Shown here: positions 6,158-33,749 of the stretch, piece after piece | Layout: each line of letters begins with the position of its first letter | Position numbering within the stretch: position 1 is the stretch's first letter | Origin: Ministeria vibrans ATCC 50519 | Taxonomy: Eukaryota > Protista > Filasterea | DNA: 35,605 bases | Assembly: GCA_943704425.1 (NCBI GenBank) | Contig: CALSCP010000519.1 | Span: 1-35,605, forward strand | Reading direction: 5' to 3' | Made by a program: the position numbers and the translations under genes | The notes under the pieces: generated by a model | Seen by the model: only the letters and a program-made list of their open reading frames with translations | Told to the model about the DNA's origin: nothing | Databases searched by the model: none

Positions 6158-7774
6158 TCAACAAAGAGTAGCATAGGCGTCAAGGGCATCCTCGGCATTG
6201 CGAGCGCGCGCCTCGGCAGCCTCAAGACGGGCCTGAAGCACCGCCTGAGGCAATATGCAGTGATCGTGCTGGTGGACGTGAGCCAGCTGCTCGAGAAGGT
6301 ACTCGGCGACGAGCACACGGTACTCGATGGTGGTCCAAAAAAGCGCCGAGGCAGCGACACTCACGTCGTCACTCTCTTCAATGCGCGCTGGAAGCAACTC
6401 GCGGATTTCGACGGAGATGGAAATGACAATGAGTGAGACGTTGAATGCGACGAGAATGTGAAGCATAAAGGGAAAAGCATAGCGTGTGTGAAAGCAACTG
6501 AGATCCATAGTGACAAGCAACACAGACTGGAGCACGACAAAGACCATGATAGGCACGGCAAGGAGCAGGGCAGCCGTCTGCTTTCTCGGATACTCATGTT
6601 CACGGTGCAGTGTCTCCTGCAGGGACAGCGCGTCTGCCACAACCGAGATGGCACCCAGGATGCCCACGAGCGAGCGGGTGAGCAGTTGACTGGGCGCACG
6701 CGAGGACGAAGGACGGAGCCAAAAAAACACGTCGGGAGCCTGGCGATTGCGCCAGGAAATGGTGCACATGACGACGCTCATGCACGTTGTGATGGCCAAC
6801 ACCAGTGAACTGGCCGTCGTGTCCGTATCAAAGATATTGGCGTCGGCCCACGCAATCGTCACCATGACAGCAATAATCATGAGCGACGTGTACATGGGCA
6901 TCCAGCGCAGTCGGTGGTGGCGATCGCGTCGCTCTCGAGGAGGAGGGGAGGCGGCGGACGAATGCACCACATTGCCCGACTTATCCATGTCGCTTAGGAC
7001 TATTTTCAATTTGGAGGGACGCGGCTGAAGCAACAAAGACATGTCCTTGACGGTGAGTCCTCGACGGTGCGCAACAAACATGGTGAAGACGGTTGTTCCA
7101 GCGGTGATGGCCACATTGAAATGGTACATCACCGACGCGGGTATGACAATCGCCGCTATGACAAGCTCAAGGTCCTCGCCCTGTCGCTGAATCAGGGCAT
7201 GCAGACTGCAGCGGTCAATTACGGGCCAGATGACAAGCACGAAGACGTTGCCCGTCGCATAGATGAGCGACGAGAGTGCGTAAGCAAAGGTCGGACATTT
7301 CAGTCCGTCGTAGAACACCAAAGTCTGCAGAGCGACAAATAGCATTTGGATGGCGGTCGAAGTCATCACAGTGATGCTGACTGCCCATTGGGTGGAGCTG
7401 AGCGGACTTCGTTCGGCGTGCGTCGCGTACGAGATGTCGCTGCTCAGGCTGATCCCCAGCGCAGTGAGTGCCAGCACGCCCAGCACAATATTCTTCTTTT
7501 CGCTCGCTTCGTCTTCTTCGGGAGGCGACAGCGTCAACGTGGCCAGGCCCAGAATGACAATGACGCAGATCTGTGCGACGGCAGACGTGATTTGGTATCG
7601 CCCAGCAAGCGGATCAAAGTGTGCTGTGGTGTTGAATGGAGAGATCACTGCACACTCTCCATCACTCCCTTCGCTCCCACCACCACCAGCACCCAGGCCA
7701 AAGAAGATACACATGATCAGGGTGCCAACAAAGACCAGCACCGGTTGGGCCACATTGCGCAGCATCACACACAC
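6158..7774 (-). CDS. Otopetrin-like 12-TM membrane protein (putative proton channel), intronless
   Basis: 538-aa ORF (ATG probably at 7765) with 12 hydrophobic helices in two 6-TM halves. Each half has a Gln-Asn-Tyr triad in its 4th-6th helices (ALQTL/TGNV/MYH and VLQSV/AFNV/IEYR), as in otopetrins. Confidence 0.65.
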   Translation of the reverse strand: MCVMLRNVAQPVLVFVGTLIMCIFFGLGAGGGGSEGSDGECAVISPFNTTAHFDPLAGRYQITSAVAQICVIVILGLATLTLSPPEEDEASEKKNIVLGVLALTALGISLSSDISYATHAERSPLSSTQWAVSITVMTSTAIQMLFVALQTLVFYDGLKCPTFAYALSSLIYATGNVFVLVIWPVIDRCSLHALIQRQGEDLELVIAAIVIPASVMYHFNVAITAGTTVFTMFVAHRRGLTVKDMSLLLQPRPSKLKIVLSDMDKSGNVVHSSAASPPPRERRDRHHRLRWMPMYTSLMIIAVMVTIAWADANIFDTDTTASSLVLAITTCMSVVMCTISWRNRQAPDVFFWLRPSSSRAPSQLLTRSLVGILGAISVVADALSLQETLHREHEYPRKQTAALLLAVPIMVFVVLQSVLLVTMDLSCFHTRYAFPFMLHILVAFNVSLIVISISVEIRELLPARIEESDDVSVAASALFWTTIEYRVLVAEYLLEQLAHVHQHDHCILPQAVLQARLEAAEARARNAEDALDAYATLC

Positions 7775-9944: not shown

Positions 9945-10003
9945 GCTTAGTGTAGATCAAGTAGTAGGAGGTTTGTGTCGGCAAACTTTGGCGATAGAAA
10001 ATG

Positions 10004-10070
10004 GTGTGAAATGTGAAATGTGAATTGTGAAATGTCAAATGTGGATTGTGAAATGTGATTATGTGAATTG
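10004..10070. repeat. Degenerate 7-bp tandem repeat (TGTGAAA/TGTGAAT), about 9 copies, just upstream of HPD
   Basis: gtgtgaaatgtgaaatgtgaattgtgaaatgtcaaatgtggattgtgaaatgtgattatgtgaattg is directly visible. Confidence 0.85.
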
Positions 10071-10267: not shown

Positions 10268-12022
10268 TTACTCTGACATATACATCGCCTCGGCAGCCAC
10301 CACAGCCTGTACAGCCGCCTCAATCGTTGACGGCGGCGCATCAGCGTTCATAGTGGGTGCATTACAGTCACTCGAAGGCACGACAACCATTGGCGCGACT
10401 GCCGTTGTTGTCGTTGCTGCTGTTGTTGATGGTGTTGGTGCTGCTGTTGTTGACGGTGATGCCGCTTCAGTTGCAGCTTGAGTGTGATCCGATTCCTGAG
10501 CACGAGGGGCACGCGTCGTGGGATGCACAGGGACACTGGCAGCGTCGCGTAGTCGATCCGCCAGCGGCGCTCCCAGCGACTCACGCACACGATCTGCGTC
10601 AATGGGAGGCTTTGTCGAGGCAGCGCTCCCACGCTTTCGGCGGTCGTCGACTGTCTTCTGCACACTCACCACAAGCGCCACGGTCTTGGCCAACTCGCCA
10701 CACACCGCACGACGATTCTCCGCCAGCACACTCCCTCGCTTGCGCATCTCGTCCACACTCCGCACCATAGCCCGAATCTGCTTCTGTGTCTCAATCTCGC
10801 GGAGGCGCAGCTGCTTCAGCTCACGGTCAATTGACTCCAGCTCACGCGACGCCTGAAGTGCGCGCGGCACAGCATCACGCGATGTTTCACTCGGAAGTAC
10901 CACATCACCGCCAGGCGCAAGTACCACTTGAGTTGCGTCGAAATCGTCTCGAGACGTCGCGGACACAACCTTGGGCGCCTCCGCCTTGATTCCCTCCTCG
11001 GCCTTCTTCGTCGGCGCTGCTGTTACCGACCCCACAGATGCAACAGCAACCTCCGCGGCAGCAACAGCAGCAGCAGCAACAGCAGCAGTAGTAGTAGTAA
11101 CATCATTGCGATGTACCGTAATGGCACCCGACGGCAGAGTGCCCAGCACCGACTGCGCCATCATGTCGCCCGTCAACTTCATTCGCTTGTTCGTCTGGTC
11201 CGTCAACATCTGCCCACTCTCCGTATACGCTGATCGCTTTTCACCCTTTTTGCGCTCAAACCCTCGTCCTCGTGCACACACCTCATCCTCTGGCGGTGTC
11301 TCGACCTCCGCCGGTGCCATCGCTTGCGTTGTGGCTGCTTCGCTTGTCCCTTCTCCTTGAACCTCCTCCTCCTCCTTTTTTTCCTCCTTCTCCTTCTCCT
11401 TCTCCGGCAGCGCCGATCCTCTACCCCCTCGCTCTGGCTCCATTGTTGCGTCTGTGCGAATGCTGCTCACCACTTTCCTTGGCCTACCCACCCCACGCTT
11501 ACGCACAACAGCGCCATTTTGCACGCCCGTGTTGGACGCTGTTGCGTTGTTGCCCTTCCCTTCGTTCACGCCTCCCGCTTGCTGTTCGACTGCCTCTGTC
11601 GACGCCTGTTTCGTTGGTGACGGCGATTCACCTGGTACACGTCTTCTTGTGGTACGGACATTATCATCTACAAACCCAAGCACACAAATAAATAAACGAG
11701 TAAAACTGAAACACAATGCATGTACCGGCCACTGACGAGGACACATCGGTCGCCAGCGATATCCGCGGAATCGGTTTGGTGACCACATTCCAACTACAAG
11801 TACACTCGTCGAGGTGTGCCGCAAGCAACGATGCGAGCGGGGTGGAAAACTTGGAGTCCCATTCGCCAACAGTGCACGTCTCAGTGGTGTGCGGAAACAA
11901 ATGAAGTGTAATCGTCGTTGAGTCCTTGTTGCGCGGTCCATCGTACTCCAAATGTGTTACAAACCGCTCAAGCTACGCATCAAGTCAAACACGTCGTTAA
12001 AAAAAACAAAAAAAAAACAACA

Positions 12023-12057
<35 letters not shown>

Positions 12058-12527
12058 TGAGGAGAGAGGAGAGAGGAGAAGAAAAAAAAAAAAGTGCATA
12101 CCAGACCATGAGAGTGGGAGAGGTCGCGAAAGGCACAGGGGAATTTGTTGGAGGACCAGAGGCGTCTGAGCGGGTAAGGAAGGCCCGGGGTGAGAAAGAA
12201 GTCGAGAGTTGAGAGTGCGACAAAACGTTCGAGGTTGCGACGCGCAAAGGCAATGGAGCAGGCAATGGGACACAGGCGCGGCTGGTCGTCCTTCTTGCGC
12301 CGCTTGGCGTCGCTCAGAGCCCTCCGCGCCAGGCTTTTGGCGTCTTCGTCGTCAAGGGCAGACACGGCATCGCGCAGCAGCGACGCGCGCGTTTCCCGCG
12401 CCAATACAAACGGCGTGTGTTGCGGACAGAGCGGCTGTGGCTTCACGGCGCTCTCTGCGACTCGGAGGCATGCCTCACGACACGACTCGTGGTCACACCA
12501 GAACTCTGACTGCGGTGGTGAGGACAT
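10268..12527 (-). CDS. Uncharacterised protein A (about 690 aa): N-terminal Cys/His-rich domain, AT-hook-like motif, disordered linker, coiled coil
   Basis: Exons 12527-12102, 11972-11726 and 11667-10268 total 2073 nt, in frame, with GT-AG introns. Motifs: CDHESCRE, LCPQHTPF, RLCPIAC, RFVTHLEYDGP, STTITLHLF, CTVGEW, CTC; RKRGVGRPRK; coiled coil LESIDRELKQLRLREIETQKQIRAMV. Confidence 0.8.
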
Positions 12528-12632
12528 ACGAAAGAAAGAATGTGTGTCAGTGTGTGAGAAAGTATCTCTTTTCTTTTGGGGACACGATCGAGTCAAGTTT
12601 CGCACTCAGTTCTATTCACAGCTTCTCTAAAA
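12528..12632. promoter_or_regulatory. Putative compact bidirectional promoter between paralogues A and B
   Basis: Only 105 bp separate the two divergent ATGs (12527 on minus, 12633 on plus). Promoter function is inferred from geometry only. Confidence 0.55.
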
Positions 12633-14183
12633 ATGGAGCATTTCCCTCCCTTTTACTTCCCTCCCGCCACGTGTACCCACGATGTCTGTCGCGAAGGGCT
12701 TTTGCGCGCCGGCCCTCACGCCTTTGATGTTTGCGTACGAGCCGGGCATCAGAGGCGCGTTGATTGTCGCCCTTCTCACACTTGCCGTCTGGCGCCTGGG
12801 CTGTCCTCTCTGTAGGTGTTGTGCCCCATGCACCAGCCGTTTATGCGCCGTCCCGACGGCCGTCTGTGTGCGTTTGCGTGTGCTTTGGGCTTTCACACCA
12901 CTACCGTTCCCATCTTCTTTTCCGTGCTCGCCGGGCAGCAGTCTCAGCGTCTCAGGAAGGGCGCCGGCATGCCCTTGGTCCGGCTCTTGAAGCGCCACGA
13001 CTGGAACTCGCCGACGATGCGCCCCACGGCGCCGCCAGTGTGTGCCGTGAACGAGGCCAAATCGCCGGACACAAAGTTCCTTATGAGTCGTTTCGTCACG
13101 GCCGCTCATCTCTCGGGGCCGCTCGCCCACAACTCCACCATTATTACTCTGTATCTCTTTAACGACGGCCTGCAGGATTCCGTCGAGCGCTGTACCGTCG
13201 CCCAATGGCACACCAAATACCACTACCCGCCAAGTGATCTGCTAGCCGTACAGTATGCCCAAGGCAACTGCATGTGTCGCATGGTCTTGCAGCTTACCAC
13301 ACACTTCCAAGGCACCGGCGTGTCCGAGTACCGTTCAGTACGCATCGGCGATTCCCAGGTGGCGTCGCTCGTTAGCAACCCCTCGTCTGGGGTTCTCCCC
13401 CCACTCAGCGCCACACCCCAACCAGTGTCCATTACCAAGAAGCGCGTCGACACACCCCGTAGCGGCATCCTCGCCTCCTTTTCCACGTCGGCCGTCGACA
13501 CATCGGGTATTCAAATCGGCTCTCCCGTTCCTTCACAGGCGTTCTCTTCCCAGGCCACCCGTCGAGCAGCACCTGCAGACGGCGCGCCACTACCCCCGCT
13601 CAAGAAATCACGACGCTCACGCAAAGACATTGACTACTCCGATTACGGTGATGGGGGCGAGGACGATGAAGACGATGAGGACGAGCGTGCTCGCATCCAA
13701 ATTGCCATTGCAGCCTCACTAGGTCGTCGCTCGCGTGGCACTCCACCCGTCGACCCTCCCAACCCCAAATTGTCTCGCCCTCGCTCCGCCAGTGCTTCCC
13801 GTGTCTCCTCCGTTCCTTCCTCTCCCCCTTCCGCTGCTAGCAGCATCAACACTACTACCACCACCGCCACCATTACCACCACCACTCCTCACCACCAAGC
13901 GCCTTCCTCTATACCTGCGCCGCACAGCGCTCCTCCGACCGTCTCTACTCCTCCTCACTTTCCCAGCGAGAGCGCTCCCTCCCGCATCACACACATGCTC
14001 TCGTCCATTGCGAACATTGATGCAGAGCTCTGCGATACTCAACTCCGCTTGCGCAACGCGGAGTCGTCGCTTGACACGTTTCTTACCAAGCTCGAGCGAA
14101 TCCGCGATAAAATCTGGCGGAAGCAGGGAATGCGCGATCTCATCGTCGAAGAGCATCTGGATGCAGTCCCAGCGCGCTCATAA
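12633..14183 (+). CDS. Uncharacterised protein B (about 489 aa), paralogue of A: Cys/His-rich domain, NLS-like and UIM-like motifs, coiled coil
   Basis: Exon 12633-12734 (alternative donor at 12729), intron to 12815 (TGTAG), exon 12816-14183. Motifs: CTHDVCRE, LCPMHQPF, RLCAFAC, RFVTAAHLSGP, STIITLYLF, CTVAQW, CMC; PPLKKSRRSRK; EDDEDERARIQIAIAASLG; IANIDAELCDTQLRLRNAE. Confidence 0.8.
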
Positions 14184-14420: not shown

Positions 14421-17400
14421 TTATTGAAAGTCGGCGTCGACCGCGGTTGCGTCGGCCGACAGGGTCACCTTAAGCTGCACGACCGAGTGCTGTTGATAGC
14501 ACTTCTCAATGTAGGGCAGAAACAGGGAGATGGCGCCGCGCGCAGGCAGCAGCGTGAGGAATTGCTGTGGGGGCATGCGCGTCGAGAGAAAGTCGATGAT
14601 GGCAAGATAGGCGTGGGTGCAGACAACGAGACGCTCGGGCGAGGGCGGCGCACGCTTCTTGTCCTGCGCTTCGGGGGTCACCGCTAGCTCCGCTTCCGTC
14701 TCGAGTGCCATTTCGTTGGCGTGGATCTCGTCACCGAGCGTGTCCAAACACAGTGCCCAGTCGTCGCGCGTGCCGCAGACTGTGCGTGAAAAACTCAACA
14801 GAATGTGTGGCGAGTGCTTTATGAGCAGCTCAAAGGCGTTGCGGAGACGACCGACGCGCGAGAGGCAAAGCAGAAGGAGCGCAAGACGCCCCGCAAAGTC
14901 ACACTCGTCGTCGACTGTATCGCCAGCACTGTCTGTGACACACGCAAGAATGTCGGCAAACGTGTCGGGCGTGAGCAGTGCAGAGGTATCGCAGAGAAGT
15001 GCCAGCAAACGGACAATGGGCGCGTGATCAATGGAAATCTTGGACGAGGGCGTGCCGGAGGTGGCGAGTACGCCAATGGACGAACGTGCTCGAGACGACG
15101 ACGCCGCCGACGATGATGATGATGATGATGACGACGACGGAGGAGGTGCACCCGTGCGGCTTCTGCTGCTGCCGGTGGTCTCGTGGAGGGCACGAAAGGG
15201 CGGCAGTTCAAAGATCCAGTCGTGCAAGAGAGACGCACGCGGACTCAGCAGAGAGGCAACGGTGACACGTGCCGGACGCGACGATGCCGACGAGGTCGAT
15301 GTGGCACTGCCATGAAGACCAAGATAGACACGTGCAAGCTCACGCGAGACGTGGTTTGCGGCGGAGACGTCCGAAGGGTCGACACACGGAAAAAGTGAGT
15401 CGAGCACACCTTCAAGGTAGCGTTGTTGCAACGCCAGCGACCGATGGGGCTCGGAGAAGGCGGTACGCAATGAGGTAAGAGCAACGGTGAGGGGCAGACG
15501 AGGTCCATGTAGCGCAACGAAGGTGCACAAGAGCGCCTCGGGCCATGTCTCGAGGACCATTGCGGTGAAGATGCGCACACGGTTGGGCCAGCGCGAGTCC
15601 TCTTCGACGGAACGTTCGACGGGCAGGTACAACAGGTGGGGCAGACTTAGGAGACGCTCCATGACAAGCTCCTTGGTGAGCGACCTGAGACGTTCGCGAG
15701 CCTCGTCAAGACGCTCCGAGTCAATGAGGAGCAGGACAGCCGCGAGTGTGTCGAGGACACAGTCGTCAAAGGGCCCCCCAGCGTTGCCATTGCTGGTTGA
15801 CGGGAGAGTGATGTGCGCCGACGACGCCAATGGCGCTGACAACCTTCCATCGGCGGGCGTTTGGTAGTGATGGAAGCTTGTGTCGTAGGTGTGTTCGGCG
15901 AGACGCGTTTCGAGGAAGCGTAGAGCCGTAGAGGGCGAATAGCAGATGATGCGGGCGTCGAGGACGACGTGTGCGACGTTGACGGGGCGATGGTGAATGC
16001 ACAGACGCAGAATGCTGTCGATGAGGGGACCTGTGTCAAGGCCGAGCAAGAGCGACGACGCGGATAGCACTGGGTGGTCCTGGTAGAGCAGGTGCTTGAG
16101 AAAGTCAAGGACGGCAACCGACACGGCCACACTCGCTGTGTCCAACAGCGCCACAATGGTATCGGCGCTTTCCTCCTTGGCGCGTTCCAAACTGAGTCCG
16201 TGTAGTAGACCAATGGCACACAGCTGAGACACATTGGACTCGGCGAGGTAGCGTGCAGCTCGCGAGAGATCGCGCAGATCAGGCTCGAGGCAGTGCATAG
16301 CCAAGAGAGAGGCAGTGGAGTGCAGCAGCGAGAGGTGGACATCGCGGCGACATACGCTCTTGGTGGTGGTAGTGGTGGTGCTAGAGAGTGCACCGGCCAG
16401 GATTGCGCCGTTCTCGTCGACTTGTACTGTGATCATCGCTTTGTTGTAGGCGACGTCGGGGGTCGCCAGCGCGTTCACGAGCAGTGTATACGCCTCGAGT
16501 AGAAGCTGCTCGTAGACTAGGCGATTGCTTTCGCGATGACTTTCAGCCGTGCTCAGCATCTCGGCGTGTAGTTCGTGCAAGGGTGTCGGCACGAGTACAT
16601 AGATGTTCCAGCAGGCAGAAGGAACACCAAAGCCAAGTGCGCGCTTGCGACGTTGCTTCGGCGTGCTACCCGCGAGTGGAGCCACCGACGCATTGGTTGT
16701 GTTGAGGGCACTGGACAAATCGCTGCCGCCCGTGAAGTCGTCGGGGAGCATTGTAAAGGCACGCGAGCGGGGTGTCTTGACGACCAGCGGCGACTCGACG
16801 TGAACATAGTCGTCGTCATAGAGACGACTGTCGTCGTCGTCATCTGCGCTGGCGTCATTGTCGACGTCGACGTCGTCGTCGTCGTTGTAGGGGGCGGTAA
16901 AGCCACCGAGAGAAGATACGTCACTACGAGCAGTGATGGTGGAGAGGTCGAGGGCAGAGATGGAAGTAGCGGCGCGAGGGCGGGATGACGAGAGAGCCGA
17001 ACGACGCGGAGTGCTGCTCGGGTTGCGACGGCGCGGCGGGGAGGACATGTTATGCTGAGGCGCTGGCTGAACACTGAGCAGGGCAACGATGCTATCGGTG
17101 ACGGAAATGCGGGTAAGGTTGAAAAAGGGCTGCTTGCCCATGAGACAGACGTCGGGCAAATTGATGGGTTTGGTGACGGAGGAGGAGGCGGAGGCGTGGA
17201 CGAGGTCGCTCAGGGAGCGCATGGTGTACGCCTCGAGACCGCCCGTGCTGATGCCGTGGGCGGCAAGCAGGCCCGCCGTGGCCGCGAAAAAAAAATAGCG
17301 GTTGGCGACGGCGTGCACGGCGGACGCCATAAAGAGATAGGAGCCAAGACGCACGGCGGCTGAGACGTCGTACGCAAAGGCCTCGTTGGCCCGGGTGAAG

Positions 17401-18423
17401 TGCAGGCGAACGCCCTCGTGGCCAATGCCGTGGCGCGTGAGCGGGTTGGCTGCGTCGGCATTGCTGGTGCGGAAGCGCGTTGTAGAGCGCGACGGCAGAC
17501 ACGGCGTGAACTGCAGTGAATGGATGGAGTCGTCGGTGGCAAAGGAGCGCGAGAGCATTGCGTCGCAAGCACCCACACGCACTCCTGTCGAGCAGTTGAC
17601 AGTGAATTCGGAAGCCGGAATGGGGCCTAGCCGCTCGCCCGCGAGCAGTTTCTGACCCGTGTGCGAGTGGCGCGCGCCATGTTGATTCTGAGCGGACGGG
17701 TCGCGGTCGGGATACCATTCACTGGTGGAGCGCGTTGAGGGGTCGCCGTGCAGACCCGGAATGGTTACAAACTCACTGGTGGCATTGAGTTCGTGAGCAC
17801 CCGTCTCAAAATTGAGTGCGACAAAGAGCGGGTCGCGACCCGCTTCGGTGGGTCGATCGGAGTAACACGACTCGTCAATTTCCATGGGCGCATCCTCAAA
17901 CATGTCGCAAAGGTCGACAGCGGCGCCTGCCGTGCCCCCTCCTCCCGCCGCGCCGCCACTGTCGGGTGCCTTGGTGGACAGCGACGACGCCGACATTGAC
18001 ACATTGTTTGACGACGAAGCAGTGAGGGTGTAGGGAGAGAAGCGAGCGGCGAGAACCGCCTGTCGACTATGGCCACCACGGCTGTTGTGATTGCCGGTGT
18101 TGCTTGCGTAGGGTGTGGAGGTGGACGCACTGCGCGCCGTGGTCGACGCGGCGATGCGGAGCACGCGAACGTCACTTTCGGCGAGCACCAGTGCGACATA
18201 GCAACCGCAAATGGCAACGTCTGTAATGGCACGCGGCGCACCAATGTCAAAGGCACGCGCCAGACCAAAGAGACCCGTTCGACGACTGCGTCGCACCACA
18301 AAGACCACAATGCCCTTGCCGGCTGCCAGCGCCACATGACCATGCAAGGGGCACACATTCATGGCAACGACAGAGCCGCCAGCAGGCAACTCAGCCACAC
18401 CGAGTTGCTCGTCGGGAACGCAG

Positions 18424-18454
<31 letters not shown>

Positions 18455-19097
18455 TGCGGTGGTCATCAGCATGCTCAGGTTCCTTCCTTCCATTGACCAA
18501 AGGTACGCCGTCGTGCGACTCCGTTGCGCCGACTTGAGCGTCGCCAGCGTTGCCGTGCATGTCATTGTCGGAGCGGTTGTGCGAGAAGGAGGGGCGCTTG
18601 ACAAGGGAGAAGCCATCGTCGTGGATGTCGTGGATTTCCGACGCATTGAAGTGGTACTTTTCGTCAAGCGCCGAATCGCTGCGCCCCTCACGATTCCCGC
18701 CCGGTATCGAGACACTGGAGGAGGTAGCAACACCCCCTGGGCGACTGTGAGAGGCGCTGGCCCGGCAGAGCGGGCGCCAGTTTGTGTAGAGACGAGCGGC
18801 GCCGTCTTGGAGCGTCAGAATGGCGTCCAGTTGTGCGACGTAGAGCACTTTGGTGGCGACCGTGCCGACACGGGGGGCAAGGGGCAAGACGCGAAAGCGT
18901 GAGATGAGCTCGGGGGCGGGGCCGTGCGGGGCGCTGGGCGCGTCTACGACGGCGTACACGGCAACATGGCCGTCGTTGGTCGCGACAAAAAGCATTCCCG
19001 AATGCGCATGGATGTCCGTCGGAATCGTCCCGGGATCGCCCGGTAACGACACCAGTCGTTCGCCTGAGAACAGCGAGTGCGGTAGTACGCGAACCAT
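14421..19097 (-). CDS. HPS3: BLOC-2 complex subunit HPS3 homologue, intronless, expanded by low-complexity inserts
   Basis: 1558-aa ORF. N-terminus MVRVLPHSLFSGERLVSLPGDP resembles the HPS3 start (MVQLY..H.F..Q.VV). Contains GLEAYTMR and P(D)VCLMG. C-terminal FLTLLPARGAISLFLPYI matches the HPS3 C-terminal FL.LLP.DG...FFLPYL pattern. Confidence 0.8.
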
Positions 19098-19446: not shown

Positions 19447-22400
19447 TCAGACGTAGTAGGAGGGAGAAATGAGAAGGTCCGTGATGACCCCCAGCTGGTC
19501 GTCGGTGAAGAGCAGCTTGTGCTTGTAGTGCCACTCATCTTGGTGCGTGCGCCAGAACTCGGCGTGTGCCTTCTTGGCCGTCGAACGAATTGGCTCCGGG
19601 TCGGACAGGTAGTCACCAAGGTCCACAAGCATTTGGGGCATCCATTCGGGTACGGAGTAAGGGTACGCTTGAACGAGGCAGGCCATGCCGAGCACACCAG
19701 CGAGACGCGTGCGCTTTGCCGTAACCATTTGTGCCTGTTTCTCTTCGCTGAGCGGTGGAGGGACCGCAGCCAACGTCGCATTCTGTGATTGCTGTTGGGT
19801 GCGTCGTCGACGAGGCAACTTGAATAGCGGTGTGGCGGCCAGTTGGCGAAAGCGCTCTTCGATGTGGTAGTCGCAGACAGGCAATGCACCGCAGCGCACA
19901 AGCCCCGAGAAGGTGGCGGCGGCGAGTTGCTGAACCTCAAGCTGCGGGTCGAGAAGAGCCTGGTAGAGCACGGCGACGAGGGTGTCAAGGTGTGCGCGGG
20001 TGAGGCGGAACAGGTTGCGGAAGACAAACCCTTGAAGGAAGTGCAATATGGCAACTTTGGTGCGCCAGGCATCGCCCGCAACAACCGTCTCAATGACGCC
20101 GACAAAGTAGTCGAGGTAGGTGACGGGCAGACGCATGTGCGAGATGAGGGAGAGCGTGTAGCGCAGCAGCGCTTGTAGGTCTTCGTCGCGCGCAAACTCG
20201 TACATACGGAAGAAAAGAGGCAGAATCTTGCTGATGTAGGGAAGACAAGTGAGACCCGCTCCGCCATGGAACGAATTAATGAGCCAATTGAGGACCGTCT
20301 TGGCCACACGTACGCTCGGCTGGTCCACCGACGTGCCTAGCACAACCGCATTGGGTGCTGTGGCGGGTGCATCGGAGCTGTCGTTATCGTCGTCGTCCGC
20401 CCTCGTGTCCATGGAGTCATCACCACCATCTGCTGTTGTTGTTGTTGTTGCGGCGGCGGCGGCGGCGGTGGTGGTGGTGGCGGTGGTTGGCTGACGGAGA
20501 CGTTCAAGGTCTTGCTCGAGCAGAGTAGCCCATTGAGCGACCACGGCGTCAACAAAGGCGTGCAAGGGTGCGAGGCCCTCCGGCTGGTCAGGATCCCAGA
20601 GCGAACGAAACACGGTGAAGATGGTGACACCGACAGACTCGCGCACAAGCTTGTACGGATGATCGAGTGCAGCGAGCATTTCGTTGAGAGTGTGAAGGGA
20701 CGGCTCGAGGCCGCGCCACGAGAGCTCGCCTAAGATGGTCTGAATGAAGTTGAGACGCGTGCAGATGGTGAAGGAGGGCAGTTGCCAGTCAAGTGGTTGG
20801 TGGACAAGGAAGCGAATGAGCCAGGTGAGACGCTTGGGGTCACGGTCGTACACACAGTTGCGTACAAGGGTGCTCCAGCTTGCGAGTGTCTCGTTGCTGG
20901 CACTCTCAAAGGCATTCTGCAGCAATGGCGTGAGGAAGGTCCAAAGACGCTGTTGTGCGCCGAAAGGCCAGTGTTTGCTGCCACGCACCAGTCCCGAGAC
21001 GACTTCGGAGGCAAGGCGTTGGCTCCAGCGGTCGGTGCGTGGCGCACATAGACGCACAATGGAGGGACGGAAGGCGTCGAAAGCTGCTTCGCCAAAGCTC
21101 GCAAAGACCCCCTTGAACATTTGTACAATGTCCGTGTCCGCGTCGTCCTGCGACGCGTCCTTCTCCTGATCCATGTATGCCAGAACGCGCTCCACATACG
21201 CCTGCGAGGTCCACGCCTCGCGCAACACTTCGCGAATCTCGTCGTAGTTGCGCGAGTCCTTGGAAGAAAAGCCACCAGGCAGATCGCCGTCAGCCATGTT
21301 GGCGTACGAGTAAGCAACGGCGCGCGGCAACACACGGTGCTTCCACCCGGCGTAGTTCTTGTCAAAGAACAGCGCTGTATTCCACTCGTCTTCACTCTGC
21401 GGAGCGGGCACAGCGTCCGCCACGTTCCACAAGCGTCGCTCACCGGTGGTGTCGTCAAGGCGCGCGGTCATGGTGTCGATGGTGACCGTGCCCGATGGCA
21501 ACTTGGGCGAGCGGGTCTTTTGCAGAAGAAGCAAGGTGGAAACGGTGCTGAGAGCAAGCTGGCGCATGGGGCGCGAGTCGTCGTAGAAAGCGTTCAGGCC
21601 AAGGCGGGCGATGCTCGGATGAATTGAGTGATCGTTACGAATGAGCTGAATGATGTGCGCAAAACAGATCATTTCGTAGCGCCAATGGAGTTTTTCGCTG
21701 CGCAAAAAGGCAAGCGTCGAGTCGACGGCGCGCGTGTATGTGGCATCGTTGGCGGCAACGAGGCTGCGGACGCGCTCTTGAACTTGCTCGGGCGTGTCAC
21801 TTAGCGCGCCAATGGGCGGGGGGTAGGCACAGGGGTTTGCAGCGAGCCAAGCGCTGACGGTGGCGCAGAAGGTGGCGCCGCGCTGCATGACGGCCTCGGA
21901 GATGTCGGCACGAATGGGCACGTACGTCACATTGCTGATGACCGAACTGACCTTTTGCACAAGGTCCTGTACCGACAGCTTGTCGATTCGCTGCAAGGCA
22001 ATAAGACGGGGCAGCACGCCGTCGCACGACGCCCACATGACTCCAATGTAGTAGAGGGGCAGTATGTCGCGCAGCACAAAAAGAGCGCCTTTCACCGTGT
22101 TGTGTGTCTCCTCGTCGATGGCCACGAGTGATTGAGCTTGTTCGGGCGCCGCACTGTCCTGTAACGTGTCCATCTCCATTGCAGTCGTGTCCGATCCACC
22201 GACGGCGGCAATACCGTCGTCCGCGAGTTTCACGGCACTTGTGGGCTGGTTGATTTTGTCGATGACACGATCGAGTACGTTGAGTGTGCTTGTAACGGTC
22301 ACCTGACGCGACTCCGAGTTGATACTATTCACCTTTTGGAGAGTTTTTTGGGCGCGCGAGCGGACGCGCGCATAGTTGCTGGTGGAGAGACCAATGAGAA

Positions 22401-25400
22401 GAGCGACCGTGCGGTGCATGAGGGGCGTGTAGGAGCCAGTGATGAGGTTCTTGCCGAGGCGCATGTTGTGCTGGGCGTAGGTGCGAATGACAAGAACGGG
22501 ACGCGGCAGATTCTTGTCGGGATCGGTGGTGACACGCAGCGTTGCCTTGTCGCTCTGATACGCACTGGCAAGGGTCGAATCGGACACACGCACACCATTG
22601 TACGTAATGAGGTTCTGGAGGGTTTTCACGGCGAGACGCATTGTGCGCGTCTCGTCCTCGTGGTGACGCAACAGCCAGTCGGTGAAGTCGATGAGCGCCT
22701 CGTGCATGCGTGCCTTGACGCCCAACAAGTAGGCGGACGCAAACACGGGGTTTTCGGCGTCGGGAACGGTGACAAAGCGGGGTGGAACAAGAGAATCGAC
22801 AGACGAGGTGGGGCTCAAGACGGCGTCTACACCCGGGGCAGTGTGTGGGAGACTGGCCGCAACACCACGAATGCAGTTGAACATGATGAGAAGCTGATGC
22901 GACATGCCGACCACATCGGCGGCTGCGTCGCTGCTCGTGTCCCTTGGGGAGTTGTCTGATGATGTGGTCGTGTGATAGTGAGCGAGTGATGTAAGTGCGG
23001 GTTCGAGGAATGTGTGCAAGAGAGACTCGGCAGCGGCAACGTCGGCGACGGAAGGAACGTGCCAGCGGATGTGGAGGTTGTCGCGGTCGCCGGGGGACGA
23101 CCAGGAGGCAAAGAGACGCGCGGGATCCGACCAGATGTCATCCACTTGGTTGTCGGGCACGGTGCGCGACTCGAGAGGGTATATGTTGAGCAGGGCACGC
23201 AAGAGGTTGCGAACAATTTTGCCAGCAAGTTTGACAAGAGCACGGCTCTTGGGTTCGTAGCGGACGCACAGCGCAACGACCTCGGTAATGCGCGGCACGT
23301 ACTCGAGCACTGCATCGCCGGCGTTCTTGATGCACTGGCCAATCATGCGAAGGGGCCAGACGAGGTCGTTGTCGGGAAGTCCGTCGGCGGCGACGCCCTC
23401 GTGGTTGGCCAGCAGGTTGACGACGGCATCGAGGTGGGGTGGCAGCATGAGTGCCATGGCCTGAGCGGGACGGGCGCGCGCCACGGCCGCACACAGTTGA
23501 CCACACAGTTTGAGTGAGTTGACACGGAGCGACGAAAAGAACTTTTGGTGGACGTGCCGCAGCGCTTCGGTGTAGAGCGTGGGAGAGAGCTGCATGAAGA
23601 GCTGCTCGAAGAAGACGGTGAGGCGACGCGCTACATTGGACTCGACAGACCAGACGGCAATGCGTTTTCCGGCGGCATTAAAACGCACGCCCACGCTGCC
23701 ACTACCGGCCCCGGCGCCGTGTGCATCGGTAAGGGCGCCCAGAGGACGCGAGCGGTTTTCGCTTGGCTGAAACTCAATGAGGGTGAAGATACGCTGGAGC
23801 AAGAGGGCGAGCCAATCGTCAAAGTGGGCGGTGGAGCGGCATGTTTCGCGAGCCGCCTCGGTGGGCTGCTGTGAGGCGGCCGCCGAGCAATCTGCAATGG
23901 GAATGCATTGGACAAGGGTGTGGAGGAGGCGTAGCGTCGTTGTCGTCTTGCTGGGGTCGTTGGCATCGATGCCCGGCAGAATGAGATGGAGGAGGGGCAG
24001 GAGATGAGGCGACGGGGCGGCGGTGAGCGGTCGCATGAGCATGGTGAGGGCGGCAATCGCCGAGCCTGTCGTGTTCGTGTCGGTGAGCGTTTCAAGGGCC
24101 GGGTAGACGCGGTCGAGGACAAGGGGGAGCAGCGAGGAAGGGTCAATGTCGACGAGGACTTTGAGGGCGGAGAGGGCGGACATGACGAGCACTTGGCTCT
24201 TGCCAAAGAGCGACAGTAGGGTCGCCGGCTGGAGGATGTGAACAAAGGCAACGCCGTCGTCGTGAGTGAGACGCTGATCGAGAGGCGCGACTGGATAAGG
24301 TACGGTGTCGCCACGCGTAGCGCGCTTTTCGTTGCAGAGTCGCTTGGCAAAGGCGACGGCCAGACAATGAATGAGGGCGGCGAGTTTGCTTTGCCACTGA
24401 CCCATGTTGCTTGGATGATAGAAGGACTCGATGGACTGGAACATGCGGCGAAGGGGCGCGTCGGGTTGTGCACAGTCACCGGGACGCAACGTGGTGACCA
24501 TGAAGTTGGCCATGTCGCGAATGGGGCGAAAGGCGTTTCGATCGCGCTTGACGAAGACGTCGCAGGTAGGCGGCAAGTGTGTGGAGTGAGGAAGGCCACC
24601 GTTGGAGCCGACGGGCAGACGAAGGACGCCGAGGAAGCGTGAGTAGAGGTCGGGCAAGAGGGGTTGCCAGTCGACGAGTTGGTCGTCGGCGACGGAGGCG
24701 AACGCGAGACGACGGAAGAGTCCCGTGAAGAGCTGGTCCCAGCCGGAGACGTTTTGGATTTCGTTCCAAGTGGTGTACATGGTGCTGAGCCAGAGATGGT
24801 GCGGCTGTTCGGTGCCAGTGGGTAGAAAAGTGCAGAGACAGGCGGCAGCAAAGAAGAAGGAGGTGTCGTGGGGACAGAGCATGGGAAGGAGCTCGTCGAG
24901 CATCTCCTGGGTGGCGGCAGGGCGAAAGAAACGACGGGCGGCGGCCGTGAGGTTGAGGATGAGCGGAATGAAGCTTGGCGGTAGGGTTGATCCATCGCGA
25001 TTCTTCGCCAAGTGATATTCACGAATGAATGAGTAGAGCGGCCGCCAGTCGAGGTAGAATGCGCCTGTGTGCAATATGGATCGTTTTCTAATGCAGCAAG
25101 GGATCATCAGTGGGTGGGCGTGGTGCATGAGGTCAGGGCCGATGCGCTATGTTCTATTTTTTTTTTTTTTTTTTTTTTTATGATTGATTGTACCTCAGAA
25201 ATGAACAGAGGACGGAAGCGGCGGTTGCAGCGGCGCCCACATCGTGGCTTTCCTCTGTGTCGATGACGACCTGGTATAGCAGTGGCACAAGCTCGACGGC
25301 GAGGTCGAGGGGCACCCGATTGACTTTGTGCACTTGCAGGAAGTCGTTGATGCGCCGCAAGTAGAACGACGTGCCCGGCGTGATCTCGCTGAGGGCCAGG

Positions 25401-30239: not shown

Positions 30240-33200
30240 ATGCCGCGTATTCAGCCTTGGGTGGGTCACAAATACGCGCTAATTCTCGGACGATGCTCGT
30301 ACGACTCCAAAACGCTTGGTCTGGGACCGCTCGTAGGCGTCGCCCCGACCGTGCGAAACGTTGCCGTCGACCTACATCGCAACGGATTCATGGTCGTCGT
30401 GGTCGCCGACAAGCCCATGACGTTGCCACGGCCCTCCTTCGACAATCAGGCGATGGAGCAAACATACGTCGACGACGCCATCCAAGCTACGCAGGCCGGC
30501 AACCTCGTGTGGAGCTCTCCCGATGTCACACGGGTCAATGTCCGTGCTGGGTTTGACAAGCTGGCCGCCATGGTTGCTGGTCACCGACCCTCAACCCATG
30601 ACCAACTTATCATTTACATTGCCGCCCACGGTATCGAAAACGCTTCTGACAGCTCGTACGGCGCCGCGTTGGGCGAGATCAAAGCGACCACGGACGCGGA
30701 TGGTAACTTGACGGGGGTCTACGAGGGCGCGTACACGATGGAGCAACTTCACCACGATTTGGGCGTCAAAACAGAACAACGGTGGCGCAACACGCTTGTC
30801 GTGCTAGACACCTGCCACTCGGGCGCTGCATTTGACACAGCGCAACAACAGCGTATCTGCACGCGTACACGTGGTGTCGGCGACACCGACGATTTCCAAC
30901 GCTCCCATCTCTCCGTGTCATTTCACTGTCTTGCTGCCGCGGCTAGCTCGTCTAATGCCTTTTGCGACGATTCTGGCACAGTGTTGCACAAAGCGCTGCG
31001 ACGAGTATGGATGTCACTTAATGGCGCAGCCGGTGCATTTGAGCGCGCTTGTGGCGTTGGCGTGGCGGAGTGGGCGACGGTGCAATGTGTTGCGGATTAT
31101 GTCAACGTGGAGCTAGCTGATCTGATGGCTTCTGGCTCGAGCGATTTCTATCTTCACAGGCAGACGTGTCTGCTAGGAAGACTTCCCTGGCTTATCGACG
31201 CCAATGTGGGCGAGTTTATCGCTTTCAACAAGGACTACATACACAGTGAGCGCCGCAAGCTCGCAATGGTTCCACCCCTACCTTTCTGCTTTATGGCACG
31301 CGAAGCTCACCTGGCGGAACTTCACTCACGACTGATGAGTGACGGGCAGGCGGCGATTGGCAACAGTATTGCTATAAGTGCGACTGGTGGGGTGGGAAAG
31401 AGTGCCCTGGCGATCGTGTACGCGACGGAACATGTGGATGACTTCACCTGGCTGCTCTGGGTGCGAGGCACCAATGCGGGAACGATGGTTGCATCGTTTC
31501 GTGAGGCCGCAGCGTACATTCCGCTGAGTGAAGTAACGAGAGAGAGCAACGATGATGAGGTGGTGGCGGCGATGCGGCAGTGGTTGGGTTTTCAAAATAG
31601 ATGGTTGATGGTGGTGGATGGGTGGGATCGTGTGACAAAGGAGATGTTGGAAATGATGCCAGCAGGACAGATGGGTGGGAAGATGATTGTTACGACACGA
31701 CTGCAGGATTTGAGTGAGTTTGGTGCGTTGTTTGGAACAGGGAGTGTCTCCAGAGCATTGTTGCTGGATGTACTGAAAGAGGAAGAAGCTTTGGAATACT
31801 TACTCGTGCGGCTGCCTTTGAGGAAGAAGAAGGAAGATATGGAGGCGTTGCGGGAGGTTGCTGTGCAGTTGGGAGGGATGCCACTTGCGCTTGAGCTTGC
31901 GGGCGGGTATCTGGCGGAGATGACTTACAAGAGTGTAAGTGAATATCAAGAAGTATTGAAAAAGGACCGACTGGGGATGTTGCAAAAGCGAACGTGTGAT
32001 TCCGATGTGCCCCTGGTTGCACCAGTGTTGGCGACGTATCGTCCAAGCATTGAGCAAGCGATGGAGATTGGGGGAGAGGAGATGGTAAAGAAGATTGTGG
32101 CGGTGATGGGTATCGTGGAAGGGAGTGGGATTGACGTAAACCTGTTGCATCTTTTGGCGACGGGGAGGAAGAGGGAGGTGGCGCGACTAGAAGATGAATT
32201 TGATGTGGCGCTTTTGTATTTGTGCCGCTTCTCGATACTGAAGATTAACGAAACGCGTGTGAGCGTTCACGAGTTGGTGCAGGACGTATGTCGAGCGATG
32301 GCATTTGTTGACGAGAGTGGAATGTGGGAGGCGATGGTCTCAATGGCAGAAATAATGCGTTTAGAGATTAACGATATTGAAACAGTCTATCGCAATCGCG
32401 AATGGAGTCAGCATGTTGGATTGCATGGGATGAAGTGCGTGAAAGTGATGTTGCGCTCGAATAATAAGTCCGACTCGGGGGGCTGGAACCATAAATGGGA
32501 GCATAATGTGATCGCTTTCATGGTCTCTCTTGCATGGATGTGGCGCGACGTTGGATATTACGACGAAGCTCTTTATGCAGCGGAGGCTGCCAACTCATGT
32601 GTACCTGAACACGAAACATTGCTAGCTGCCACTGCGTTTTGTGCCCTTGGTGGTGTTCACATTGTGAAAGCGAACTACGATGAAGCTTTGAGATTATTGG
32701 AAAAGGCTCGCATCGCACAGGAAGCTGCTCTGAATATTTCCGAATTTCCACTTGATATGGCACACACGTACAGAAGGCTGGGTGATGCTTTAGCTGCGAA
32801 TCGTGACTATCCAGCAGCAGAGAAATACTATTCCAAGGCTCTTAAACTCTACGAAGACCCTTTACTCGATGCGCATTCCTTCATTGCCCATACTCTCAGC
32901 AGTCTCGGCAACGTTTTTGAGGAGCGAAAAAAATTTAAACTCGCCTTGGAGCGCTACAACCAAGCGTTTCAAATTTGCACCGAGAGGCTGTTTCCTGAAC
33001 ACCCCCTGTTGGGGGAAACCATAAATCGTCTGGCTTCCATTTACTACAAACAGAGAAAGTTCGACCGGGCTTTAAAGAAATATCAAGACGCCCTTGTTAT
33101 CAAAGAAGCATCACTTGGCGAAGACCATCCCTCGATCGCTGCGACGTGCCATAATATCGGTCTCGTGTACCGCAAGCTTAAAAAAAATTCTCAGGCTGAG

Positions 33201-33749
33201 GAGTTTTTTAAACGTGCCGATAAAATCTATAACAAGAAGCTTGGTGATAAACACCCCCTCTCAAAGGATACTGCTGAAACCTTAACTGCAGTGGTCGATT
33301 CCAACCGCAACAAGTCGACCTCGATACTAATCGAAACAACGAGTCAAGACGGCAGCCAAGCCGTGGTTTCGCGTTCTTTGCGATCATTGCGGTATGTCAA
33401 GGCCAAGGCCAAGTCACTTTGTTTCATGCTCTGGAAACTGATCTTGAAACTATTGCTTTGCATTTTGTGCATTGTATTCTTCCCAATATCTCTATATGCT
33501 TTTTACCGATCCCTTCAAAACACCCATCGCCCCATGCTCGGAACCACCCATCGCCCCATGCTCGGAACCCATTGTCCTGAGATTGAAAGAATAGAGTTAG
33601 ATATTCTATGCGGTATAGAACGCAGTTGTGGTCGCTACCGGTGCCAGTTTAATCGCAACCCGTGCCAGTGTTATCCCAACCCGTGCCAGTGTTATCCCAA
33701 CCCGTGCGAGTGTTATTGCAACCCGATTTTTCATGAAACAGACGTATGA
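30240..33749 (+). CDS. NLR-like STAND protein: caspase-like (peptidase C14) domain, NB-ARC, TPR repeats, TM helix and Cys-rich tail; intronless
   Basis: 1169-aa ORF. C14 motifs: KYALILG..SY, DQLIIYIAAHG (catalytic His), LVVLDTCHSG (catalytic Cys). NB-ARC motifs: FMARE..L, Walker A ATGGVGKS, Walker B WLMVVDGWD, sensor MIVTTR, GGMPLAL (GLPL), VHELVQ (MHD-equivalent). About 6 TPRs with a roughly 42-aa period (HP..A.T..N.G.VY). TM LILKLLLCILCIVFFPISLYAFY; tail (NPCQCYP)x3. Confidence 0.9.
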   Translation: MPRIQPWVGHKYALILGRCSYDSKTLGLGPLVGVAPTVRNVAVDLHRNGFMVVVVADKPMTLPRPSFDNQAMEQTYVDDAIQATQAGNLVWSSPDVTRVNVRAGFDKLAAMVAGHRPSTHDQLIIYIAAHGIENASDSSYGAALGEIKATTDADGNLTGVYEGAYTMEQLHHDLGVKTEQRWRNTLVVLDTCHSGAAFDTAQQQRICTRTRGVGDTDDFQRSHLSVSFHCLAAAASSSNAFCDDSGTVLHKALRRVWMSLNGAAGAFERACGVGVAEWATVQCVADYVNVELADLMASGSSDFYLHRQTCLLGRLPWLIDANVGEFIAFNKDYIHSERRKLAMVPPLPFCFMAREAHLAELHSRLMSDGQAAIGNSIAISATGGVGKSALAIVYATEHVDDFTWLLWVRGTNAGTMVASFREAAAYIPLSEVTRESNDDEVVAAMRQWLGFQNRWLMVVDGWDRVTKEMLEMMPAGQMGGKMIVTTRLQDLSEFGALFGTGSVSRALLLDVLKEEEALEYLLVRLPLRKKKEDMEALREVAVQLGGMPLALELAGGYLAEMTYKSVSEYQEVLKKDRLGMLQKRTCDSDVPLVAPVLATYRPSIEQAMEIGGEEMVKKIVAVMGIVEGSGIDVNLLHLLATGRKREVARLEDEFDVALLYLCRFSILKINETRVSVHELVQDVCRAMAFVDESGMWEAMVSMAEIMRLEINDIETVYRNREWSQHVGLHGMKCVKVMLRSNNKSDSGGWNHKWEHNVIAFMVSLAWMWRDVGYYDEALYAAEAANSCVPEHETLLAATAFCALGGVHIVKANYDEALRLLEKARIAQEAALNISEFPLDMAHTYRRLGDALAANRDYPAAEKYYSKALKLYEDPLLDAHSFIAHTLSSLGNVFEERKKFKLALERYNQAFQICTERLFPEHPLLGETINRLASIYYKQRKFDRALKKYQDALVIKEASLGEDHPSIAATCHNIGLVYRKLKKNSQAEEFFKRADKIYNKKLGDKHPLSKDTAETLTAVVDSNRNKSTSILIETTSQDGSQAVVSRSLRSLRYVKAKAKSLCFMLWKLILKLLLCILCIVFFPISLYAFYRSLQNTHRPMLGTTHRPMLGTHCPEIERIELDILCGIERSCGRYRCQFNRNPCQCYPNPCQCYPNPCECYCNPIFHETDV
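33520..33724 (+). repeat. In-frame coding tandem repeats: 24-bp x2 (THRPMLGT) and 21-bp x3 (NPCQCYP)
   Basis: acccatcgccccatgctcggaacc twice at about 33522-33569; aacccgtgccagtgttatccc about three times at 33657-33724. Confidence 0.9.

Follow-up and report, generated by a model that had tools for sequence, protein, structure and literature searches.

A head-to-head pair of old, diverged paralogues with a Cys/His-rich N-terminal domain in the filasterean Ministeria vibrans

Two divergent genes of the filasterean protist Ministeria vibrans ATCC 50519 (contig CALSCP010000519.1 of assembly GCA_943704425.1) lie so close to one another that they raise the questions of whether they are related, whether they are expressed together, and whether their products might act together. 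We call them A and B here, and analysed them within a window of 35,605 nucleotides (positions 1 to 35,605 of the forward strand of the contig, to which all coordinates refer). An initial annotation of the window, made from its letters alone, had proposed that A and B arose by an old inverted duplication, are kept under a common promoter, and encode a co-expressed heterodimeric nuclear complex whose subunits share an unrecognised Cys/His-rich domain and a coiled coil. Our analysis makes it near certain, on comparison of the encoded proteins, that A and B are old, diverged paralogues in inverted orientation; the other parts of the proposal are considered in turn below.

Structure and paralogy of genes A and B

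Gene A lies on the minus strand and has three exons, gene B lies on the plus strand and has two, and the pair is arranged divergently, head to head, in a window that is eukaryotic in character, with short GT..AG introns, microsatellites and long intronless open reading frames (ORFs) nearby. The ATG of gene A is at 12527 (minus), and its product is about 690 aa long. Exon 1 of A (12102..12527, minus; 142 aa, phase 0) holds C11-x-H13-x2-C16, LCPQH (C34, H37), RLCPIAC (C86, C90), PLRRL and C131, together with an insert, charged and helical and about 37 aa long, that is missing in B and lies between the second and third conserved blocks. Intron 1 (11973..12101, minus; 129 nt, GT..AG) is mostly GA/A microsatellite, and it is followed by exon 2 (11726..11972, minus; 82 aa plus 1 nt), the best-conserved block of the gene, with the conserved motifs RFVT, GP, STxITLxLF, ExCTVxxW, LLA and CxC. 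Intron 2 (11668..11725, minus; 58 nt) reads CT..AC on the plus strand, and the codon split across the exon 2/3 boundary, G|AT (Asp), preserves the frame into exon 3 (10268..11667, minus; 465 aa plus stop), which is mainly low-complexity or disordered, then contains a heptad-periodic helix, and ends in an Ala/Thr/Pro-rich tail of about 120 aa. The ATG of gene B is at 12633 (plus; product 489 aa), one base away from the position, 12634, that the initial annotation implied. Its exon 1 (12633..12734, plus; 34 aa, phase 0) carries C14-x-H16-x2-C19, its intron (12735..12815, plus) is 81 nt long and GT..AG, and its exon 2 (12816..14183, plus; 455 aa plus stop) encodes, in order, the remaining part of the Cys/His domain (residues 1-190), a Pro/Ser/Thr-rich linker and the C-terminal helix. 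The stretch between the two ATGs (12528..12632, no strand) is 105 bp long, just as the initial annotation had it, and is the presumed shared promoter and 5' untranslated region (UTR).

Alignments, searches and structure models were all made with single exons, and the N-terminal motif of B, which is split by its intron, was scored in pieces. Since a three-row MAFFT alignment misplaced the C-terminal half of A exon 1, block-wise alignments were used. The source of that error was an internal echo in A, the NLERFVAL of exon 1 lying about 45 residues ahead of the LERFVT with which exon 2 opens; this echo is probably due to chance. The best match between the two genes joins A exon 2 to residues 90-159 of B exon 2 (13083..13292, plus), where 25 of 70 residues are identical (36%; BLASTP E 3e-12); none of 2000 shuffles reached its score, and the corresponding Gumbel p is about 3e-11. 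The C-x-H-x2-C-R-E block is also significant (BLASTP E 3e-4; shuffle p ~5e-4), as is the L-C-P-x-H-x-P-F block (p ~0.01), and in the R-L-C-x3-C ... P-L-x-R-L ... C block 19 of 60 residues are identical, with a score that was reached by 44 of 2000 shuffles. Outside the N-terminal domain, the helix block ID-x-EL ... LRLR gives p ~0.007 when the comparison is limited to the helix regions.

The conserved blocks are colinear in A and B, and in the aligned columns eight Cys stand opposite Cys and two His opposite His; the Cys residues are concentrated in the first approximately 224 residues of each protein (10 of 13 in A and 10 of 11 in B). The linkers of the two proteins share no similarity, and the intron positions differ, with the introns of A falling where B is continuous and the intron of B falling where A is continuous. 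When the entire 29.7-Mb assembly was searched, both with the individual proteins and with a two-row profile, these two copies were the only ones found, and the first 190 residues of B, compared with the whole genome, matched only A exon 2 (E 5e-6) besides B itself. We regard the pair as the product of an old inverted duplication because the colinear blocks are significant, the Cys and His residues align, the linkers have diverged, the introns differ, and there are two copies only. The paralogy that the initial annotation suggested is thus borne out by exon-by-exon alignment, and so is its remark that this similarity escapes notice in the ORF track, where it is invisible because introns split it.

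Transcripts, splice junctions and 5' ends

Transcript evidence was taken from contigs of public sequencing runs, namely X1 and X3 (one study, 2025), X5 (a second study, 2011) and X10 (2022); contigs of this kind are unable to rank expression levels. The label of X1, X3 and X5 as RNA is only a guess, and we take these runs to derive from RNA because spliced forms are present in them; their contigs are identical to the window minus the introns. The X10 contigs retain the introns, and X10 is taken to be a genomic run because its contigs read through them. In gene A the joint 11972|12102 is seen in X1, X3 and X5, and so in two studies, and the joint 11667|11726 is seen in X1 and X3; in gene B the joint 12734|12816 is likewise seen in X1 and X3. 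RNA contigs cover 12102-12509 or 12102-12514 of A exon 1, span all of A exon 3 but skipped simple repeats, and cover 12639-12734 (X3) or 12586-12734 (X1) at the start of B. All three splice junctions predicted in the initial annotation (12101/11973, 11725/11668 and 12735/12815) are therefore found in spliced contigs, and transcripts of A and of B occur in the same samples (X1 and X3). It is near certain that both genes are expressed, and they are spliced as predicted. The sole difference between runs is at window position 11637, an A>G change on the plus strand that is present in X5 and X10, which bear one organism label, and not in X1 or X3, which bear another; it turns codon 10 of A exon 3 from GTA (Val) into GCA (Ala), and the window agrees with X1 and X3.

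The extreme 5' ends are the part of the transcript record that speaks against two complete genes with the starts given above. Positions 12515-12585 are uncovered by RNA contigs, the B contig of X3 begins only at 12639, and no RNA contig directly confirms either ATG. Moreover, X1 (and only X1) has an alternative gene A intron (12510..12585, minus; 76 nt, GT..AG; joint 12509|12586) whose removal deletes the ATG of A. The 5' exon of this form is antisense to B exon 1 and has an in-frame stop ten codons ahead of the joint, and the form is unable to encode the full A protein because the ATG is spliced out and that stop lies upstream. Its existence means that gene A is in some cases transcribed from a start within gene B, and that in one form or more the two transcription units overlap in head-to-head fashion. 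Finally, the gene A contig of X3 departs from the genome at 12514 and runs on for 255 letters, an extension that would place an in-frame TAA right before the frame of A. Its unique match in the genome lies on contig C1725 (from 16819), where an unrelated gene has its 5' UTR and start (MGRKRQME...), and on that account we rejected the possibilities that it is a spliced leader or a 5' coding exon so far overlooked; the join at 12514 is most likely a head-to-head chimera of two mRNA 5' ends. We have retained both ATGs because they are the sole in-frame starts that translate the conserved N-terminal blocks, and because assembled contigs may be expected commonly to lose short 5' tips. It is plausible that a promoter is shared by A and B, with transcription start positions that are presumed ones.

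The N-terminal domain, linkers and helices

Does the N-terminal part of A and B belong to a known family? The collections that we searched lack the source genome and very close genomes, and a blank in them thus means no relative at moderate distance. Pfam, searched with all five exons at E up to 10, gave only sub-threshold noise (GAGA, PBP1_TM, BLOC1S3 and CoV_M); the best NCBIfam match, CopL at E 0.17, is noise as well, and the best matches among PDB sequences, in single-sequence and profile searches, had E-values of 0.2 to 1.2. A phmmer search with B residues 1-190 against 1.84 billion representative proteins found none at E up to 0.001, word-indexed searches (including one with a profile of both paralogues) and metagenome scans found no relatives, and searches of the ESM Atlas gave nothing usable. 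At the level of sequence the N-terminal domain, of about 200-220 residues, is unclassified, in agreement with the initial annotation, which did not recognise it as a named family. Two specific candidates were rejected. The GAGA-factor C2H2 zinc finger (PF09237) scores 14.8 bits, short of its cut-off of 20.2 (E 0.031; PDB 1yui, E 0.2), A is without the two His ligands of that finger, and B does not conserve the region as such; membership in a Mis18/Yippee-like group is contradicted by the lack of a CxxC pair in either N-terminal domain and of any Pfam match. The role that we consider most likely for the conserved residues is zinc binding, to judge from the eight aligned Cys and two aligned His that are concentrated in this domain, and these residues would hold two or three structural zinc ions in a globular fold.

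The linkers carry different short motifs. That of A contains an AT-hook-like motif, RKRGVGRPRKV (11468..11500, minus), with a GRP core and basic flanks (Pfam AT_hook, PF02178; 15.7 bits, E 0.013), as well as short basic clusters that resemble nuclear localization signals (NLS). In B there is an NLS-like basic cluster by pattern only, KKSRRSRK (13602..13625, plus), and, again by pattern only, an acidic run followed by a motif like a ubiquitin-interacting motif (UIM; 13668..13730, plus; exon 2 residues ~285-305), in which I-Q-I-A-I-A-A-S fits hydrophobic-x-x-Ala-x-x-x-Ser. A shares its GRP core with AT-hook proteins of the HMGA type, and B shares the acidic run and the hydrophobic-x-x-Ala-x-x-x-Ser pattern with UIM adaptors of the RAP80/S5a type; unlike those proteins, A and B have one copy each of a short linear motif, and no family membership is implied.

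Beyond the linkers each protein has an amphipathic helix. A scan for hydrophobic heptad periodicity over at least 28 residues without Pro passes only at starts 273-314 of A exon 3 and at starts 389-412 of B exon 2. The predicted heptad-periodic helices extend over exon 3 residues ~273-341 in A (10643..10849, minus), including IDRELKQLRLR, and over exon 2 residues ~389-439 at the C-terminus of B (13980..14132, plus), including IDAELCDTQLRLR. Of the C-terminal coiled coil that the initial annotation assigned to both proteins, the similar helix in each holds up and its position in A does not, since about 120 residues follow it there.

Might the two helices pair with one another? Complex prediction was run on the A-B helix segments only, as a heterodimer, with three controls, and a pass in such a run cannot tell which family member binds. 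The interface score (ipSAE) of the A-B helices was 0.55 (three runs, 0.55-0.56) versus 0.02 for the best control, with at least 91% contact agreement among runs; the predicted local distance difference test (pLDDT) score was 84-85 for the A segment and 82 for the B segment, and at least 81 for the partner. In calibration of the tool 51 of 78 solved complexes attained the mark, as did 2 of 108 mismatched pairs and 7 of 44 neighbouring gene pairs that had been picked blindly; scores of 0.60 or below were those of 5 of the 78 solved complexes, plus all 4 mismatches that passed. The prediction lends weak support to pairing of A with B through their helices, a modest rise in the odds and no more. 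The heterodimeric nuclear complex of the initial annotation fares accordingly: its heterodimeric part gains a little from the A-B helix prediction, and its nuclear part would follow from the NLS-like clusters.

Proposed roles, alternatives and neighbouring genes

A and B share a three-part plan that would consist of the N-terminal domain, a long disordered linker that is fully diverged between the two, and the amphipathic heptad helix. In this plan the linkers would give A a contact with the DNA minor groove, through its AT-hook-like motif, and B a possible contact with ubiquitin, through its UIM-like motif; the conserved helix would mediate pairing, with A-B pairing favoured; and the short shared upstream region would keep the doses of A and B in step. 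A head-to-head layout can balance the doses of two partners. Our tentative reading, to which we give slightly less than an even chance, is that A and B are a lineage-restricted pair of nuclear, chromatin-associated adaptors with a zinc-stabilised N-terminal domain, pairing through their helices, and coupled expression. For these proteins we infer zinc binding, a nuclear location and dimerisation, and their function as well; they are best described as resembling known kinds, namely zinc-finger-like coiled-coil nuclear proteins and head-to-head paralogue pairs. A bolder version, which we think rather improbable, is that the N-terminal domain, about 200 residues long, represents an undescribed zinc-binding family restricted to a single protist lineage and made up of two halves, one helical (CxHxxC/CPxH/Cx3C) and the other beta-rich (CTVxxW/CxC), and that the pair would work as a coiled-coil-paired chromatin adaptor linking AT-rich DNA (through A) to ubiquitin (through B).

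Several results pull against the adaptor reading. The blanks in the homology searches say little on sister species. Single-sequence AlphaFold2 models are unusable (pLDDT 30.4 for B exon 2 residues 1-190 and 42.7 for A exon 1). The AT-hook-like motif of A scores under the Pfam cut-off of 17.4 bits, and a 30-aa peptide with the UIM-like motif of B had no match to Pfam (UIM, PF02809) at E up to 10. The coiled-coil similarity is not significant by BLASTP on long pieces (E 4.5), and an interface score of 0.55 falls in a band where predictions turn out wrong more often than right, except when the guess had been a likely one beforehand.

Alternative explanations were weighed for the domain and for the pair. 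The conserved Cys and His might not be metal ligands at all, and might instead be redox-active, form disulfides, or be buried in a fold without metal. We think this improbable: although no metal-binding family was matched, with CopL being noise, and C-x3-C and C-x-C spacings are also known in non-zinc contexts, the paired C-x-H-x2-C...C-P-x-H arrangement is typical of zinc sites, the translated N-termini have no evident signal peptide or transmembrane segment, and the basic clusters and AT-hook would indicate the nucleus, a reducing compartment in which disulfides are improbable. A slightly less improbable, but still doubtful, alternative is that a known zinc-finger superfamily includes this domain as a strongly diverged member, for example as a degenerate RING/SP-RING-like module that retains just the second zinc site and is followed by an accessory beta-rich domain; the isolation of the lineage and the fast evolution of the proteins would then be all that keeps it from being recognised. 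Both A and B have C-x-H-x2-C-x17-C-P-x-H within their first 40 residues, with identical spacing, which we take to be the C3-H4-C5...C7-P-x-C8 part of a RING or SP-RING; SP-RINGs retain only the second zinc site. When 14 RING domains of this genome were made into a hidden Markov model (HMM), residues 11-34 of A aligned to its positions 16-38 with a score of 6.3 bits, which was reached by 70 of 5000 composition-matched shuffles (p ~0.014). However, an HMM of the second half of the RING alone was not significant (988 of 5000 shuffles reached the score), and Pfam at E up to 10 gave no RING, zf-MIZ or U-box match in A exon 1 or the B exons. The first RING ligand pair is missing as well, as the 10 (A) or 13 (B) residues that precede the motif contain no Cys, and the upstream frames of both genes run into stops that leave no room for it. 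Searched with PF02891 at E up to 10, the genome as a whole yielded two zf-MIZ loci, both on other contigs. A and B thus share the spacing of ligands C3, H4, C5, C7 and C8 with RINGs and SP-RINGs but, unlike RINGs, are without the first ligand pair and hairpin, and in them an approximately 80-aa beta-rich block and extra conserved Cys follow. Membership in the RING finger family proper (zf-C3HC4, PF00097) was rejected, since all that A and B have of the eight-ligand cross-brace is the C3-H4-C5(-C6) and C7-x2-H part, and membership in the SP-RING family (zf-MIZ, PF02891) was rejected since no profile matches at this locus.

The alternative that concerns the pair, that A and B form no complex and that their layout is a leftover of the inverted duplication, strikes us as unlikely but well worth keeping in sight. 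Each paralogue would then act alone or as a homodimer, with sub-functionalised linkers that contact DNA in A and ubiquitin in B. The dissimilar linkers with their different motifs, the differing intron positions, the weakness of the complex prediction, its indifference to which family member binds, and the fraction of blindly picked neighbours that pass in calibration are all consistent with this explanation. Against it stand the facts that the helix block is the sole part conserved beyond the N-terminal domain, that the heterodimer score lies far above all three controls, and that A and B occur together in the same RNA samples.

As for known systems, the adaptor reading of A and B finds parallels in two. 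The head-to-head H2A-H2B and H3-H4 histone gene pairs are likewise related genes that stand back to back and share a very short upstream region; unlike them, A and B have no sequence relation to histones, and their partnership is weakly predicted. Mis18 alpha and beta combine a Yippee-like zinc domain with a C-terminal helix that builds a hetero-oligomer. The likeness of A and B to Mis18 is one of general layout only, that is, two paralogues that each combine a globular, Cys-containing N-terminal domain with an assembly helix; unlike Mis18, A and B are without the CxxC pairs of the Yippee fold, exceed it two to three times in length, and contain long disordered linkers. Should the N-terminal module prove to be a new zinc-binding fold, a domain family would be gained, together with an example of head-to-head duplicated partners. 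Currently A and B are one case among the many lineage-restricted orphan genes of isolated protist genomes, and as such not very surprising; the useful outcome is a set of verified, RNA-supported gene models for both.

The remainder of the window contains several other ORFs. An intronless ORF of 1558 aa downstream of B (14421-19097, minus) has a weak match to Pfam HPS3_N that is above the cut-off (27.6 bits, E 1.5e-6), and it is followed by an intronless homologue of the PSME4/Blm10 proteasome activator (19447-25128, minus; 1893 aa) in which three Pfam domains are matched at E 1e-29 to 1e-91. Farther along, an ORF of 1169 aa (30240-33749, plus) encodes NB-ARC (E 1.4e-13) and then many TPR repeats, an NLR-like, STAND-type architecture in a protist. 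On the other side of the pair, an ORF of 538 aa (6158-7774, minus) has no Pfam match at E up to 0.001, and an array of TGTGAAA-like heptamers occupies window positions 10000-10070, in the interval that separates the 3' end of gene A from the next gene upstream.

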